Sequence record: NC_027399.1
Length of the DNA stretch: 64,000 bases
Strand: one strand, 5' to 3'
The translations under genes and the position numbers were made by a program. A model generated the notes under the pieces. It saw only the letters and a program-made list of their open reading frames with translations, was not told the origin of the DNA and made no database searches. This document shows, piece after piece, positions 6,806 to 59,305 of the stretch (position 1 is the first letter of the stretch; the number at the start of each line of letters is the position of its first letter).

Positions 6806-7031
6806 AATAATTAAGCAGTACGAACAATACGTAACTATGCTTGAAACCATGAATGCGGAATTAGAAGTTTCTGCATTTAATTCTGTACATAGATACTTTA
6901 TAAATCGTCCAGTGTTATATAAAAACAATGAATATAAAATTCAAAATGTATTCAGAGATGAAGAAAGTACCATAATTTTCCTACTGTATAATAATATATA
7001 TGTGGATTATACTGAAGTAACGTTTATTTAA
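6789..7031 (+). CDS. Hypothetical protein, small paralogue family
   Basis: FINRPVLY...YKIQNV; ends VTFI. Confidence 0.6.
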   Translation: MCNSSKIIKQYEQYVTMLETMNAELEVSAFNSVHRYFINRPVLYKNNEYKIQNVFRDEESTIIFLLYNNIYVDYTEVTFI

Positions 7032-9696: not shown

Positions 9697-9846
9697 ATGG
9701 ATATTGATGATACGTATTTATATAATCTTGAATTAGTGAGAGTTGGTGTATTATTAGTAACTTATTATACTAACTACAAATGTATTAATTCTGTTATAAA
9801 TTCTATACTTGATTCATGGGTACATTATAGTTCCAGATTACTATAA
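9697..9846 (+). CDS. Small hypothetical protein (49 aa)
   Basis: SD AAGGA, ATG 9697. Confidence 0.45.
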   Translation: MDIDDTYLYNLELVRVGVLLVTYYTNYKCINSVINSILDSWVHYSSRLL

Positions 9847-41227: not shown

Positions 41228-41235
41228 TATTTATA
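41228..41235 (-). promoter_or_regulatory. T4-like late promoter TATAAATA
   Basis: Exact TATAAATA 27 nt upstream of ATG 41201. Confidence 0.7.
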
Positions 41236-43239: not shown

Positions 43240-43275
43240 TATTTATAAAGAAAAAGCCCCCAGAGAGGGGGCTTT
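43240..43275 (-). promoter_or_regulatory. Late promoter TATAAATA abutting the upstream gene's terminator
   Basis: TATAAATA 43240-47; hairpin AAAGCCCCC/GGGGGCTTT 43253-75. Confidence 0.75.
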
Positions 43276-45421: not shown

Positions 45422-45458
45422 TATTTATAAATAAAAAGCCCCGATATTGGGGCTTTTT
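45422..45458 (-). promoter_or_regulatory. Late promoter TATAAATA abutting a terminator
   Basis: TATAAATA 45422-29; AAAAAGCCCC/GGGGCTTTTT 45433-58. Confidence 0.75.
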
Positions 45459-53259: not shown

Positions 53260-53298
53260 TATTTATAATAAAAAAGCCCCCATAAGGAGGCTTTTTTT
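53260..53298 (-). promoter_or_regulatory. Late promoter TATAAATA abutting a terminator
   Basis: TATAAATA 53260-67; imperfect hairpin AAAAAGCC...GGCTTTTTTT 53271-98. Confidence 0.7.
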
Positions 53299-53299
53299 A

Positions 53300-55966
53300 T
53301 TATAATGATATTTGCCAATATATAGTAGATGCATCTAAATTATTAGAACTTGTTATAGTGAAAGATACACCATTAACGATATTAGAAATTGATAATGTTC
53401 CTATATTAGAAGATGATAATATTCTTTTAAGATCTATATTAGATACATATCTTAAAGTGCTCGCTGTACTAGATGTAGATAATTTAACAGCAGATGTATT
53501 AATGGTGGCAGTGCCTGCTGTTAATGTTACCATACCAGATGTTGGTGCGGTTGTTGAATTTATATCTAAAGTGTTGTTATTTAACATTGGTGACAATGGC
53601 TGTGATGAATATCCACCCAACAAATACCATAAGTTCCCATATCCTGCCATATTAGTATTTTTAACACTAACTAGTTCTGGTCTAATACCAGACGAGCCTC
53701 TAAAATATAAACATCTTGTTTGAATCGTACTGTAAGGAAAATCACAATTGTCAATATAAAGTGAAAATTGATTTGCAGGATCTGAATTAGAGCCACAATC
53801 GACACATGCACTTGAATTATCAATTCCTCTTGAATTTATAATCCTTCCGCCCAACATAGCATATCCATATTGATTGTTAAGAGCTTCACAATCTTCAATA
53901 TTTCCACCTTCCCATACTAAACTGAATCCGTTTCTACCATTATTAGTTGCTTTGCACCCAATGAGTCTAGTATTGATCGCACCGTCACCCTGACCGAATC
54001 CATCTAATGTTGAATAATCAGCCAAACAATTAATATATTTTACATTTCTTGCTCTTATTTGGAATCCATCATCACCAGATTTATATGCACGACAATTTGA
54101 AAATGTTATATTTCTTCCAATATCATGAGTATCAAAACCTGACAATGTTGACGACGTTGAAGTACAATCATTTATTAATATACCATTTGGTTCTCCATAT
54201 ATGGATGACCAATTTATAGAAACTCCATGTCTACAATCATCAAAAAAGCATTTATCAACAGTAACTTCTTCTGAATATCCTAAGATTTCTACACCATACC
54301 ACCCCTGATGATATGCATTACAATTTTCAATTAATACATTTCTACAACTGTTTATTTTTAATGCAGTTCTTCCGCTAACATCACCTGTGTATTTTTCTTT
54401 AGAACCATATAATTGTGTATTTTTAATAACGATATTATCACAATATACCATATTCATTGTTATTGGGAATAACGTAGTATAATTGATATTATTGAATGTT
54501 AAACCATCAATATTTACATTTTTCACAATATCCATTTTAGAAATTAATGTATTATCACTTATTGTAAAATCATAAAGGGCAATTTTATCAATATATAATT
54601 GATTAGCATCAATCTTCGTTATTTGTCTCATTATTCCAATTTTAACACCTTGAGCATTAACCCCTTCAACCAATTTTTCAGAACGAATTTCTACATAATC
54701 ACCAACTGAAAATTTAGATGCATCAGTAACATTAACAATAAAAGATGAACTAGACACGTCACTTGTTAATGTTGTTGTTATTGTAGTTGATACTGAACCA
54801 GAACAAATCAGACCTTGAATCGTTGGTCCAGATGGGAAAAGGAAAACATCTTTATTAAAATATAAATTTGTATTACTTTTTATAGTTAGTGCTTTAGTTA
54901 AAGTTAAATTAGAATCAAATCTCAACGATACGTTACCAGTAGATAAAAATGTATTAATACCATCAATAGTAGTAAACCATGATGATAATGCTGGACCAAT
55001 ATATCTTCTTTTAATCCTTTTATTATTAATGACGAAACATGTTCCACCATCTTCAACGGTAATGGTGTCATTATTGTCATAATAAAAATAACCAGCACCC
55101 TCCGTTGTGTTTAATGTTTTACCACAAACGAAAATCTCATTAATTTCATCCCAATTTATATTTTTTATATCTGAATAAATTATTTTAGATATACTATTAC
55201 TATTATATAATATATCAAATTCTTCTTGTATAGAATTTCCAGATTTAGTATTAATATATGAAGATGCATTTACATCCAATAATTCTTGTTTTAAAACATA
55301 TTCATCACTTTGGATAATAATATCACCAAGCATTATAATAATTTCGTCATCTTGATATAATTCTTCAGAAAAAGTGATGATTCTATCAGCACCAATACTA
55401 TAAGCAGTAATGGGATTCTGCAAAACACCATTAATATAAACAATTGCAGTACTGAAATCATATGGCACTTGAATTGTTGTTTGGCCTTGCATTGCATTAG
55501 CTGTATAAATTCTATTAAGTTTATCATTAGTACTGATATTCGGATTGCCAATAAAAACATATAATAAATCACCAGCTTCTAATTCAGTAGTGAATGTTAA
55601 TGTGCTACCAGATACGGTGTAATTCAACCCAGGTAATTGAATTGAACCATTAACAAATACAGTTATAGTACTGAATGTGAATGGAATATTAAAATCAGTT
55701 TGACCATCAGTTGCTGATGCAGAATATGTTTTAATACTTGCATTAAAATTCGGAGTAATTTTTTCAAAACCAGTACTGGTTTCGGGATTATTACCAAGGA
55801 CACCAACCCCATTCCACACTGTACCATCAGTGTATAACCAATAATCATCTGATGTTGCAGTAGTACCAGATTTCCACATTTTTAATGAATTTTTAGTTAG
55901 TCCATAAGCAACTTCAACAGTAGGTAGATGTGCGTTCCAGTCCAGAGTTAAACCCTCTGTTTCCAT
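53300..55966 (-). CDS. Tailspike / putative depolymerase with two docking-type repeats, 888 aa; lacks its N-terminal anchor because of an upstream frameshift
   Basis: AHLPTVEVAYGL module, two INGxLQ-type repeats, beta-helix. Confidence 0.85.
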   Translation of the reverse strand: METEGLTLDWNAHLPTVEVAYGLTKNSLKMWKSGTTATSDDYWLYTDGTVWNGVGVLGNNPETSTGFEKITPNFNASIKTYSASATDGQTDFNIPFTFSTITVFVNGSIQLPGLNYTVSGSTLTFTTELEAGDLLYVFIGNPNISTNDKLNRIYTANAMQGQTTIQVPYDFSTAIVYINGVLQNPITAYSIGADRIITFSEELYQDDEIIIMLGDIIIQSDEYVLKQELLDVNASSYINTKSGNSIQEEFDILYNSNSISKIIYSDIKNINWDEINEIFVCGKTLNTTEGAGYFYYDNNDTITVEDGGTCFVINNKRIKRRYIGPALSSWFTTIDGINTFLSTGNVSLRFDSNLTLTKALTIKSNTNLYFNKDVFLFPSGPTIQGLICSGSVSTTITTTLTSDVSSSSFIVNVTDASKFSVGDYVEIRSEKLVEGVNAQGVKIGIMRQITKIDANQLYIDKIALYDFTISDNTLISKMDIVKNVNIDGLTFNNINYTTLFPITMNMVYCDNIVIKNTQLYGSKEKYTGDVSGRTALKINSCRNVLIENCNAYHQGWYGVEILGYSEEVTVDKCFFDDCRHGVSINWSSIYGEPNGILINDCTSTSSTLSGFDTHDIGRNITFSNCRAYKSGDDGFQIRARNVKYINCLADYSTLDGFGQGDGAINTRLIGCKATNNGRNGFSLVWEGGNIEDCEALNNQYGYAMLGGRIINSRGIDNSSACVDCGSNSDPANQFSLYIDNCDFPYSTIQTRCLYFRGSSGIRPELVSVKNTNMAGYGNLWYLLGGYSSQPLSPMLNNNTLDINSTTAPTSGMVTLTAGTATINTSAVKLSTSSTASTLRYVSNIDLKRILSSSNIGTLSISNIVNGVSFTITSSNNLDASTIYWQISL

Positions 55967-56220
55967 TTTTTCTTTTAATTTGCTGTATATAACCGGAACC
56001 CAAGCAGTATCTGAAATACCACCATCAGTATTTGGATTATTAGTACTGGTAATATGAGGTAATGTACCTTTCCATACATATCCAGTTTTAATTGAAGTTA
56101 CTGGATCTGTATAATATAAAATTTGGTTGTTTGATACTAATCGTTTGTTAATAACAAAGTCACCAGCATCAATTAGTGCACCTGAAATATTTGTTGCAAA
56201 CTTAAATTGTTCAATGACAT
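55967..56220 (-). pseudogene. Frameshifted 5' part of the 888-aa tailspike
   Basis: SD GAGGT plus ATG 56220 gives MSLNNLS.. and stops after 15 codons. The -1 frame encodes NQILYYTD..GYVWKGTLPH..TDGGISDTAW, continuous with METEG. Confidence 0.8.
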
Positions 56221-56253
56221 ATTAAACCTCATCTAAAAGTTTATGTATAGTAT

Positions 56254-56281
56254 TATTTATGATGCACATTAGAACTAAATA
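56254..56281. promoter_or_regulatory. Back-to-back divergent late promoters
   Basis: CATAAATA on - (56254-61) and CTAAATA on + (56275-81). Confidence 0.6.
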
Positions 56282-56314
56282 CATGAAAGCAAATGCAAAC
56301 TAAGAGGTTTTGAC

Positions 56315-59305
56315 ATGTCTTTAAGTAATTTAAGCTCAAGTAACAGTAATGGGGCATTTCTTGATTATGGAGAATTCAGAAGTGGTGTTTACATCCAAAC
56401 ATCAAATCAGATTTTATACTTCACTGATGAAAATGGAAATAAAGTAGGTTATCAGTGGAAGGGACTTTTGCCTCACACAACAACAACAAATGATCCAAGC
56501 ACGGATGGTGGTATTTCGGATACTGCTTGGTGTAGTATTGTTGGCAGTGGATTTATTGAAAAATTATCAAAAGAGGGGATTGATTTAAGTTGGAAAGCAC
56601 ACTTACCAACAGTTGAAGTTTCTTACAATTTACCGCATAAATCACTAAAAATATGGGAAGAAGGTACGAATAGTACTGATAATGATTATTGGTTATACCC
56701 AGGTGATGGTACCGTGTGGAATGGGATTGGTGTTCTTGGTGATATACCAGATGCACCTTTTAAGCAAATTGTACCACAAAATAATGTAATAGAATGGAGT
56801 GCAATTGCAACAGAAGGACAAAACCAATTTACTGTACCGTATGAATTCACAAATATATCAGTTTTTATTAATGGATTATTACAGAATAAAAGTACTGGTG
56901 GATATGTAGTTAATGGTAGTACTGTTACATTAAATGGTTCATTAAAAGCTGGTGATGACATTCACGTAGTAATATCAAATATCCCTATTAAAAATATAAA
57001 TTATATTACTGATGTTGAATTATCACAACCCGATGCAGCACAAAAAATTGGATTATTGCATGGTGGAAATATACAAAATTTACAAAATTTTCTTTCTTTT
57101 GATATGTTTAATATTGATAAAACTGGTTCAACTGATGTAACTAGTCAAATAAATAATATTTTTTCATTAGCAAATCAATTAAATATTCCAATAAAACAAC
57201 ATGATGGTACATATTTAGTTTCTGGCTCCACTATATTTACAATAAACACGGATTGTGATCTATCCGGCGTAACAATTTTACCATCTTCTAATTTTACTGG
57301 ATATTTTCTATATACACAAAATGAACAGCCAACAACATATAATTCATCTTCATCATTGGTCACTTTAATAAATTCAGCAACAATTAATGCAAATGATTCA
57401 ATATTATATGGATTAATAAATGATACCACATTGGATGGTAATGCTATTTTTATGAAAGGCAATGATCCTCTATATGTTGCTCGTGGCACAACAAAAAATT
57501 GGTGGTGTAATACGAGAATATCAAATCGAGGTAAAATGGATGATTATTTAAAATATGGGGTATCAGGTATAAATGAAGTTATTTCATTACCTATATCAAA
57601 AAAAGTAACTACAATAAAATTACCAAATTGGGATTTTATAAATCAACCTGCTAATAATGGCGTAATAAGATTTAATAATATTTCTAGATATAGAATACAC
57701 GGTGGTAGTGTTTTTAATAGGCCACTTAATGATATAAATAAAGATCCAGTTATAATTAGTATAAATTATGCATATGATATAATACTTCAAGATTTTTATG
57801 ATGAATATCCATCTTGGCCATTAGTAGGTGGCTCTATTGCTTATGCATATACTATAAATTTCAACTATATTAATCGTGTTACATTTAAAGATATTAATTC
57901 ACAAGGTTATGGTTGGGGAATTGTTGGGGGGCAACTAGCAACTAATATTACATATCTTCGTTGTAATATTAATAGAGTTGATATGCATGATCCATTTATG
58001 GGGTATTTAAAAATTTTAGACTGTGATTTGGGATATTATGGCGTATCTGCAACTGGTATGGGAGATATGTATATTGAAAGAACTACTTTTAATATTGATG
58101 ATCTAGCATTTAATGGTTGGAGAGAAGTTGATGGTATAATAAACACTAGACCGGATTTTGGTGGGTGGTTTGATGGTGGTGTATATATAAAAGATATTAC
58201 AATTATTGGAGATGCATCCAAATTTAGAGAAATTAATAATCGCGGAGTTTCTTTATTTTCAGCATATTCATATAATGCAACATTAAGTTATATTCCGAAT
58301 GGATCACCAGTCGAACCGTGGGGATTTAAAGAAATTATAGTTAATGGATTACGATGCACTAAACCTATAACAGGAAAAAGATTTTCATCACTAGTATATG
58401 CTGCTTCTGTACAAAATGTAGATTATTTTCCAAGACATGTAAAATTTAATAATTGTGATTTTAATTCTTCTGATGTTGAATGTATAGATTTACATGGATG
58501 GAAAATAACACCAGACAATTCAAGTAAAACATCAATATCAAATACTATGAATTTTAAATCAACAAATTTTATAGAATTCACTGATTGTTCATTTGTGGGG
58601 TTAGAAATTTTAAGACCATATTCTTCATATGATTATATGAATTTAGAGTTAAAACTTAATAATTGTAAATATATTGGTTCAAACATTTCTCCTATTAGTT
58701 TTTACACTGATCAAGTTGGAAATTACGAGTTTACAAACTGTGATATCAATTTTATTAGTGATACTACAAAGAGTACTTCAAGTTTATCAAATAGACAGTC
58801 ATCATTTGTAATAAATGGTGGTCAGATAAATTCTGTATCAGTACCATTTTCAATATTATATAATAGTGGTTATTCGACTCCAGTTTTAGTTAATAATACA
58901 ATTTTTAAAGGTTCATTTTCACAATCATCAGTGACTTCTATTAATTTAAATGTGGCAGAATTCGCACAATTATCAAATTGTAGATTTTATAGTAATGTGA
59001 ATAATTCTTATATATCACCAGCATTATGGCTAGGTAGTACTTCGAACTCAGCAACATCAATAACTGTTATGCGTGGAAATAAAATTAATACAGTTATAAC
59101 CAATACCACAACTGTTAGTGGTATATCCATAAAAACTGATATAATTCCATTTGGAGTTGCATCTGGACACATAAATGGGTCTTTTTATGTTGATGCTACT
59201 GGAACAACTGGAACATACCAATTGTATTTAAATTCGTTGAATTTGAAATCACAAATTGGAAAAATTGTTTCAAATGGTACAATATCAGGAATTTATTTAC
59301 AGTAA
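56315..59305 (+). CDS. Tailspike / putative capsule depolymerase with one docking-type repeat, 996 aa
   Basis: MSL-type N-terminus, AHLPTVEV module, INGLLQ repeat, DKTGSTDVT..I head motif, beta-helix. Confidence 0.87.
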   Translation: MSLSNLSSSNSNGAFLDYGEFRSGVYIQTSNQILYFTDENGNKVGYQWKGLLPHTTTTNDPSTDGGISDTAWCSIVGSGFIEKLSKEGIDLSWKAHLPTVEVSYNLPHKSLKIWEEGTNSTDNDYWLYPGDGTVWNGIGVLGDIPDAPFKQIVPQNNVIEWSAIATEGQNQFTVPYEFTNISVFINGLLQNKSTGGYVVNGSTVTLNGSLKAGDDIHVVISNIPIKNINYITDVELSQPDAAQKIGLLHGGNIQNLQNFLSFDMFNIDKTGSTDVTSQINNIFSLANQLNIPIKQHDGTYLVSGSTIFTINTDCDLSGVTILPSSNFTGYFLYTQNEQPTTYNSSSSLVTLINSATINANDSILYGLINDTTLDGNAIFMKGNDPLYVARGTTKNWWCNTRISNRGKMDDYLKYGVSGINEVISLPISKKVTTIKLPNWDFINQPANNGVIRFNNISRYRIHGGSVFNRPLNDINKDPVIISINYAYDIILQDFYDEYPSWPLVGGSIAYAYTINFNYINRVTFKDINSQGYGWGIVGGQLATNITYLRCNINRVDMHDPFMGYLKILDCDLGYYGVSATGMGDMYIERTTFNIDDLAFNGWREVDGIINTRPDFGGWFDGGVYIKDITIIGDASKFREINNRGVSLFSAYSYNATLSYIPNGSPVEPWGFKEIIVNGLRCTKPITGKRFSSLVYAASVQNVDYFPRHVKFNNCDFNSSDVECIDLHGWKITPDNSSKTSISNTMNFKSTNFIEFTDCSFVGLEILRPYSSYDYMNLELKLNNCKYIGSNISPISFYTDQVGNYEFTNCDINFISDTTKSTSSLSNRQSSFVINGGQINSVSVPFSILYNSGYSTPVLVNNTIFKGSFSQSSVTSINLNVAEFAQLSNCRFYSNVNNSYISPALWLGSTSNSATSITVMRGNKINTVITNTTTVSGISIKTDIIPFGVASGHINGSFYVDATGTTGTYQLYLNSLNLKSQIGKIVSNGTISGIYLQ

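Follow-up and report, generated by a model that had tools for sequence, protein, structure and literature searches.

Whether the K1 capsule depolymerase gene of the Klebsiella phage K64-1 is truly interrupted by a frameshift, or only appears so in its database record, is the question raised by the region upstream of the gene for protein S2-4. S2-4 is annotated as a protein of 888 amino acids (aa). The original prediction held that a frameshift detaches an N-terminal anchor from this tailspike, and it offered three explanations: an assembly error, a real mutation that removes the spike from the virion, or low-level slippage that acts as a host-range switch. We analysed the last 64 kb (64,000 nucleotides [nt]) of the genome (AB897757 / NC_027399; genus Alcyoneusvirus), referred to here as the window, whose position 1 corresponds to position 282603 of the record. 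In megablast searches, window positions 55700-56330 are 100% identical to K64-1 (AB897757.1 / NC_027399.1) and 98–99% identical to the phages RaK2, Muenster, OU509535, phiKp_21, KP13-7 and RCIP0023. This Klebsiella jumbo phage is the reference genome of its species. No mention of a frameshift in S2-4 was found in the literature searched.

The annotated S2-4 protein

The annotated S2-4 coding sequence lies on the minus strand at positions 53300-55966 (BAQ02841.1; also LC121104) and covers residues 85-972 of the intact protein, comprising XD/T4-gp10-like branching domains and a K1 lyase body. S2-4 is widely cited as a K1 depolymerase and is described in reviews, which refer to Pan et al. 2017, as the 888-aa K1-specific capsule depolymerase of K64-1; it is the only known K1 depolymerase of this phage. 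The protein has the three domains expected of a K1 capsule-specific lyase: a Rider domain (K1-lyase_Rider, PF24149; 5.5e-32), a right-handed beta-helix (Beta_helix, PF13229; 1.3e-10) and a K1-lyase C-terminal domain (K1-lyase_C, PF24146; 9.3e-20). Matches of the DUF4183/XD type are found at residues 231-263.

The K1 lyase of podophage NTUH-K2044-K1-1 (7w1c) aligns with residues 377-965 of the S2-4 read-through at an E value of 1.4e-94. The catalytic bodies of the two enzymes are homologous, and both contain K1-lyase_Rider and K1-lyase_C, but in place of the head/XD branching region of approximately 330 aa in S2-4, a short T7-like adaptor is found in the podophage enzyme. PDB entries 9k4a ("Depolymerase, capsule K1-specific") and 9k4b contain the 888-aa S2-4 construct after a 34-residue N-terminal extension, which is presumably an expression tag; S2-4 therefore starts at Met85 in these entries. 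The recombinant 888-aa form is reported to be an active K1 depolymerase and to have yielded a structure.

The start of the S2-4 gene

Several features on the minus strand point to a gene start well upstream of the annotated one. The sequence CATAAATA, a T4-type late-promoter-like motif, is located at 56254-56261 (minus strand), 34 nt upstream of an ATG codon at 56220-56218, and is identical in the six relatives named above. T4-type late promoters have the established consensus TATAAATA. The motif fits a promoter of this type and may well function as one. The heptamer ATAAATA is depleted in the window (23 occurrences found vs 67 expected), yet S1-2, S1-3, S1-1, S2-3 and ATG 56220 are each preceded by it at a distance of 27–34 nt. 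A Shine-Dalgarno (SD) sequence, GAGGT, is found at 56226-56230 (minus strand); in phage Muenster it is annotated as the ribosome-binding site of the orthologue. No SD-like, purine-rich GGAG precedes the annotated start, ATG 55966.

In the record as it stands, ATG 56220 opens an open reading frame (ORF) of only 15 codons, MSLNNLSLQQIFQVH (56173-56220, minus strand), which ends at a stop codon at 56175-56173. Codons 1–7 of this ORF read MSLNNLS, and the relatives continue as MSLNNLS-ATNISGAL in one frame. Judged by these alignments, the first seven codons are the true start of S2-4, and the remainder of the short ORF is out-of-frame read-through caused by an insertion (described below). The paralogues S2-5, S2-6 and S2-7 all begin with MSLxNL, as does the 15-codon ORF, and the promoter-like motif and SD sequence likewise agree with those of the paralogous spike genes. 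The late-promoter motif, the SD sequence, the MSLxNL start, and the stop-free frame and paralogue homology that follow all mark ATG 56220 as the true start of the S2-4 gene. The gene anatomy of the original prediction is thus upheld: the late-promoter-like motif, GAGGT, ATG 56220 and the short ORF are all present, and the true start lies approximately 84 residues before the annotated one, with a conserved N-terminal head or anchor module between the two.

The detached segment and its predicted head domain

The N-terminal coding segment detached from the annotated gene occupies 55967-56200 on the minus strand. The -1 frame has no stop codon over the 78 codons that begin with the TTT at 56200-56198, and it leads into ATG 55966 and the 888-aa ORF, as had been proposed from its direct continuation into METEG. 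Also as proposed, the segment shares homology with the N-terminal regions of the neighbouring paralogues, with identities of 53% to S2-5 (996 aa), 46% to S2-6 (767 aa) and 27% to S2-7 (719 aa). Its identity to the intact orthologues is 99%.

The open frame, the paralogue homology and profile matches together suggest that the segment encodes a head domain of the type found in the tailspikes (TSPs) of phage CBA120. Residues 14-70 of S2-4 match Pfam PF18668 (Tail_spike_N, the TSP1/Gp66 N-terminal domain, known from CBA120 TSPs and G7C gp66) with a score of 22.3 bits, below the cut-off of 25; S2-5 scores 22.5 bits and S2-6 25.6 bits against the same cut-off. When a profile built from the segment, its paralogues and its orthologues is compared with the PDB, CBA120 TSP4 (5w6h) is matched at an E value of 1e-8 and TSP1 (4oj5) at 3e-6; TSP3 (5w6f) and other tailspikes are also matched, with E values for TSP4, TSP1 and TSP3 ranging from 1e-8 to 1.5e-4. 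The assignment rests on these sequence-profile matches and on a published AlphaFold model of the RaK2 gp531 head region, to which S2-4 is 99% identical (PMC10253068). In CBA120, conserved N-terminal modules of TSP1-TSP4 assemble several spikes into one branched fibre, and the same principle would apply to K64-1. CBA120 differs from K64-1 in belonging to another phage family, the Ackermannviridae, and the order of its head and XD domains is not that of the S2-4 type (PMC10253068).

Nature of the lesion

Six independently sequenced Alcyoneusviruses (RaK2, Muenster, KP13-7, OU509535, phiKp_21 and RCIP0023) were aligned with K64-1, a comparison that the original prediction had suggested. At the minus-strand T3 run at 56198-56200, K64-1 reads AAGTTTGCA, whereas all six relatives read AAGTGCA, with one T, and have an uninterrupted ORF from the same ATG. 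The frameshift in the K64-1 record is therefore real, but it is not the missing T that had been proposed: the lesion is a frameshifting 2-nt insertion (T3 vs T1 in relatives) that is private to this record. The repair suggested earlier, extension of the run to T4, does not match the T1 of the relatives and would give a protein of 973 aa with an extra Phe that is absent from all of the relatives. With the two T's removed, the K64-1 gene is 2919 nt in length, equal to 972 codons and a stop, and the annotated start becomes Met85. The orthologues are annotated from the ATG that matches 56220 in Muenster, phiKp_21 and RCIP0023, from an in-frame ATG 12 nt upstream in RaK2, and from a start offset by one base in KP13-7.

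A whole-window comparison likewise shows the TT insertion to be private with respect to both RaK2 and Muenster. A search of IMG/VR for the T3 form returned only RaK2, which has T1, and a search of JGI metagenome contigs for this form gave no match. Inverted repeats between S2-4 and S2-5 were considered as the cause of an assembler tangle and rejected: the only sizeable pair (48 nt, 85%) is at 55782-55829 and 56704-56751, far from 56198.

Public sequencing runs

The insertion is also missing from public sequencing data. In each of four public runs, a contig bridges 56198 without the two T's and with no other differences to the window. These contigs match 53300-56330; apart from the missing T's, a single G>A at low depth is the one difference listed across the 3 kb. 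The four runs belong to one 2021 study, and so count as one independent source, and have a depth of 3–8. The 1.9 kb K1-specific 3' part of the gene is matched only by K64-1 records in a phage collection of 50,697 records, suggesting that the runs hold K64-1 itself or a near-clone in which the gene is intact. Their source may thus have been K64-1 or a sister isolate.

Quality of the K64-1 record

The K64-1 genome was obtained by high-throughput sequencing, according to the originating laboratory. For a comparison with OU509535, we rebuilt the record from six stretches and the window. The record has 35 N's, distributed over 22 places. Among the 334 OU509535 ORFs with a length of 100 aa or more, 15 are shifted out of frame over more than 45 nt in K64-1; some of these cases reflect sequence divergence or genuine polymorphism. 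In comparison with up to five relatives, 22–23 nt adjoining an N are missing at record positions 6912, 48064, 204848 and 251510, and 4 nt are missing at the N-junction at 256877. The flanks of these five junctions are perfectly conserved in three to five relatives, and all five fall inside ORFs that are intact elsewhere (217, 769, 183, 200 and 101 aa). Because an N cannot be biological, the junctions with missing nucleotides are assembly defects.

Two single-nucleotide changes are similarly private to K64-1: one nucleotide is inserted at 9815 (CCATATGG -> CCAATATGG) and one is deleted at 200604. Each change breaks an ORF that is intact in five relatives. Three further candidates, at 199548, 210223 and 257382, were rejected as K64-1 errors: they are common to some relatives, hence real polymorphisms, so this test for record errors is able to discriminate. 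Overall, the K64-1 record is draft-like. Seven indels in the window are private with respect to RaK2 and Muenster. Six are 1-nt intergenic changes, four of them in A-runs, and the S2-4 insertion is the only coding private indel in the 40 kb that the window shares with these two phages. Errors are therefore sparse in this stretch of the record.

Origin of the two extra nucleotides

The two extra T's probably result from an error of sequencing or assembly, in a record of draft quality. This explanation is favoured because the insertion is private, is absent from otherwise identical DNA, and occurs in a record with other defects. Among the three options of the original prediction, it is thus the plain record error that gains from the comparison, and slippage as a host-range switch that is left without support. 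S2-4 would then in reality be one ORF of approximately 972 codons that begins at ATG 56220 behind the late-promoter-like motif and the SD sequence. The intact protein is predicted to begin with a head domain (residues 1 to approximately 84), followed by two XD/T4-gp10-like branching domains and then by the beta-helix of a K1-specific lyase and C-terminal domains; both the "888-aa tailspike" that starts at Met85 and the 15-codon ORF would be annotation artefacts. Without the head domain, the spike would be predicted to drop out of the fibre, in poor agreement with infection of K1 strains, and the isolating laboratory states that K64-1 infects the K1 reference strain.

Besides the sparseness of errors in this stretch of the record, two points run against an error. 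An over-call from T1 to T3 is not a classic homopolymer error, and growth on the K64 isolation host (on which K64-1 was reportedly isolated and propagated) would not select against the loss of S2-4. A real and very recent 2-nt insertion in the sequenced stock, uncoupling the head domain from the lyase, is nevertheless unlikely. In such a stock, S2-4 would be absent from the virion or present there in reduced amount, or low-level production would start at the internal Met85, and K1 activity would come from free enzyme or from residual attachment via the XD domains. The insertion is, after all, in the record and is not typical of the errors seen in long homopolymers; the way in which the other private window indels avoid coding sequence suggests reasonable local accuracy; and S2-4 would be dispensable on a K64 host unless other spikes dock on it. 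Set against this are the absence of the insertion from otherwise identical DNA in four runs, the reported infection of K1 strains, and the lack of an SD-like, purine-rich GGAG before ATG 55966. At least seven other private defects break conserved ORFs in the record, making an error the cheaper assumption. It is likewise doubtful that the TT is real in a stock that infects K1 hosts with a lyase uncoupled from its head domain. Were this the case, either the first head domain would be dispensable for docking, with attachment through XD domains, or free or internally initiated enzyme would open the capsule for a virion lacking the spike, and nature would, by accident, have put the current assembly model for branched Alcyoneusvirus fibres to a deletion test.

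We consider it highly improbable that the T3 run is a site of programmed recoding, at which a -1 or +2 ribosomal frameshift or transcriptional slippage would provide a minority of full-length spike as a host-range rheostat. The case for recoding is one of arithmetic: the two frames overlap by eight codons, and a -1 shift would join them. A T3 run, however, is far too short for polymerase slippage, and the two-frame arrangement is found in none of the six relatives, so there is no conserved signal. Inspection by eye of the overlap (AAT TTA AGT TTG CAA CAA ATA TTT CAG) revealed no slippery heptamer X XXY YYZ in register, in keeping with the earlier remark that the site is not a perfect heptamer. 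The minimum free energy of the 98 nt downstream, -14.5 kcal/mol, does not distinguish them from shuffled sequence (z -0.85). An overlap of two frames in a tail-related gene does recall the programmed frameshifts of phage tail genes (the lambda G/GT-type -1 shift). Lambda-type sites are conserved across relatives and contain a slippery heptamer, whereas the K64-1 shift is private to one record and has neither signal. The proposal of low-level slippage as a host-range switch consequently lacks a slippery site, a downstream structure and conservation; the locus is biologically ordinary.

Very little weight can be given to the converse reading, in which the natural product is the 888-aa protein from METEG and the upstream segment is a decayed remnant. 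The GenBank annotation and the reported activity and structure of the recombinant protein are consistent with it. Against it, the upstream segment has 78 stop-free codons, near-identity to intact orthologues and a retained head-domain profile, and the promoter-like motif and SD sequence precede 56220 rather than 55966.

Relationship to RaK2 gp531 and implications

The closest characterized counterpart of S2-4 is gp531 of phage RaK2 (YP_007007686.1), a positional orthologue that lies between the homologues of gp530 and gp532 and is divergent from gp532. Over its first 100 residues, it shares 99% identity with the K64-1 read-through. The two proteins differ in their C-terminal bodies (a K54 endoglucosidase in RaK2 vs a K1 lyase in K64-1), and the gene has no interruption in RaK2. 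In vB_KleM_RaK2, gp531 is present in the virion and serves as a K54 depolymerase and the primary receptor-binding protein (PMC10253068). Its head region of approximately 310 aa is described as containing two CBA120-head-like and two XD/T4-gp10-like domains; gp531-gp533 are proposed to dock on gp528 via their head domains, and gp531 is proposed to carry further spikes (PMC10253068). S2-4 has both the head/XD N-terminal region and the syntenic position in the spike cluster that characterize a gp531-type branching tail fibre. By analogy, the K64-1 virion may carry intact S2-4, docked via its head domain in the manner proposed for gp531.

If the two T's are a record error, as we favour, the annotation of S2-4 should be corrected to a protein of approximately 972 aa that starts at window position 56220, and both the database entries and the 9K4A/9K4B construct would be without the CBA120-type head domain. 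This domain would matter for assembly models of the eleven spikes of K64-1 and for spike-swap engineering. The several unresolved junctions and broken ORFs in the K64-1 reference record also call for caution in fine comparisons. Enzymatic work on the 888-aa fragment stays valid.

Private indels and probable junction defects in the K64-1 record

Five N sites in the original GenBank record of Klebsiella phage K64-1 (AB897757; L019, L023 and L024 denote fetched stretches of it) lack adjoining sequence when compared with 3–5 relatives, in which the flanks are identical. The missing sequence amounts to 22–23 nt at 6912 (L019:6912-6914), 48064 (L019:48064), 204848 (L023:8848), and 251510 (L024:6510), and to 4 nt at 256877 (L024:11877). 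Each site falls within an ORF that is intact in the other genomes (217, 769, 183, 200, and 101 aa, respectively), and these sites look like contig-junction defects. N sites of a similar kind are found at 86672 and 183703 (comparison with OU509535 only). Elsewhere in the record, approximately 20 single N's are clustered within 200 nt (242804-242997; L023:46804-46997), the mark of a low-quality stretch.

Single-base indels private to K64-1 at AB897757 9815 (L019:9815) and 200604 (L023:4604) disrupt ORFs of 108 and 176 aa, both of which are intact in all five relatives (RaK2, Muenster, KP13-7, RCIP0023, and OU509535). These lesions are of the same kind as that in the K1 capsule lyase gene S2-4: an adjacent base is doubled or dropped, with no long homopolymer involved. 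The window itself contains six private 1-nt indels (reference: RaK2 and Muenster), all of them intergenic (3549, 21196, 29362, 29798, 30629, and 35802); four of the six lie in A-runs. These indels reflect either genuine differences in length or miscalled homopolymers.

S2-4 annotation and structure

The 888-aa S2-4 CDS (window 53300-55966) is present in the original GenBank record. In the RefSeq re-annotation (NC_027399 334802-342432; L001:3547-6531, a reverse-complemented stretch), S2-4 is reduced to a 'tail fiber protein' of 443 aa, with the remainder given over to 'hypothetical proteins' of 20–32 aa, despite the open 888-aa frame. PDB entries 9k4a and 9k4b ('Depolymerase, capsule K1-specific') contain a 922-residue chain: the 888-aa S2-4 construct, to whose N-terminus 34 residues have been added, presumably as an expression tag. 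Residues 1–84 of what is probably the native protein are therefore absent from the solved structure.

Putative late promoters

Five minus-strand spike gene starts have an ATAAATA motif 27–34 nt upstream (window 41228-41234, 43240-43246, 45422-45428, 53260-53266, and 56254-56260, all on the minus strand). Across the window the motif occurs 23 times against 67 expected, a three-fold depletion. Both its placement and its depletion fit putative late promoters of the T4-like type, with the motif avoided at other positions.
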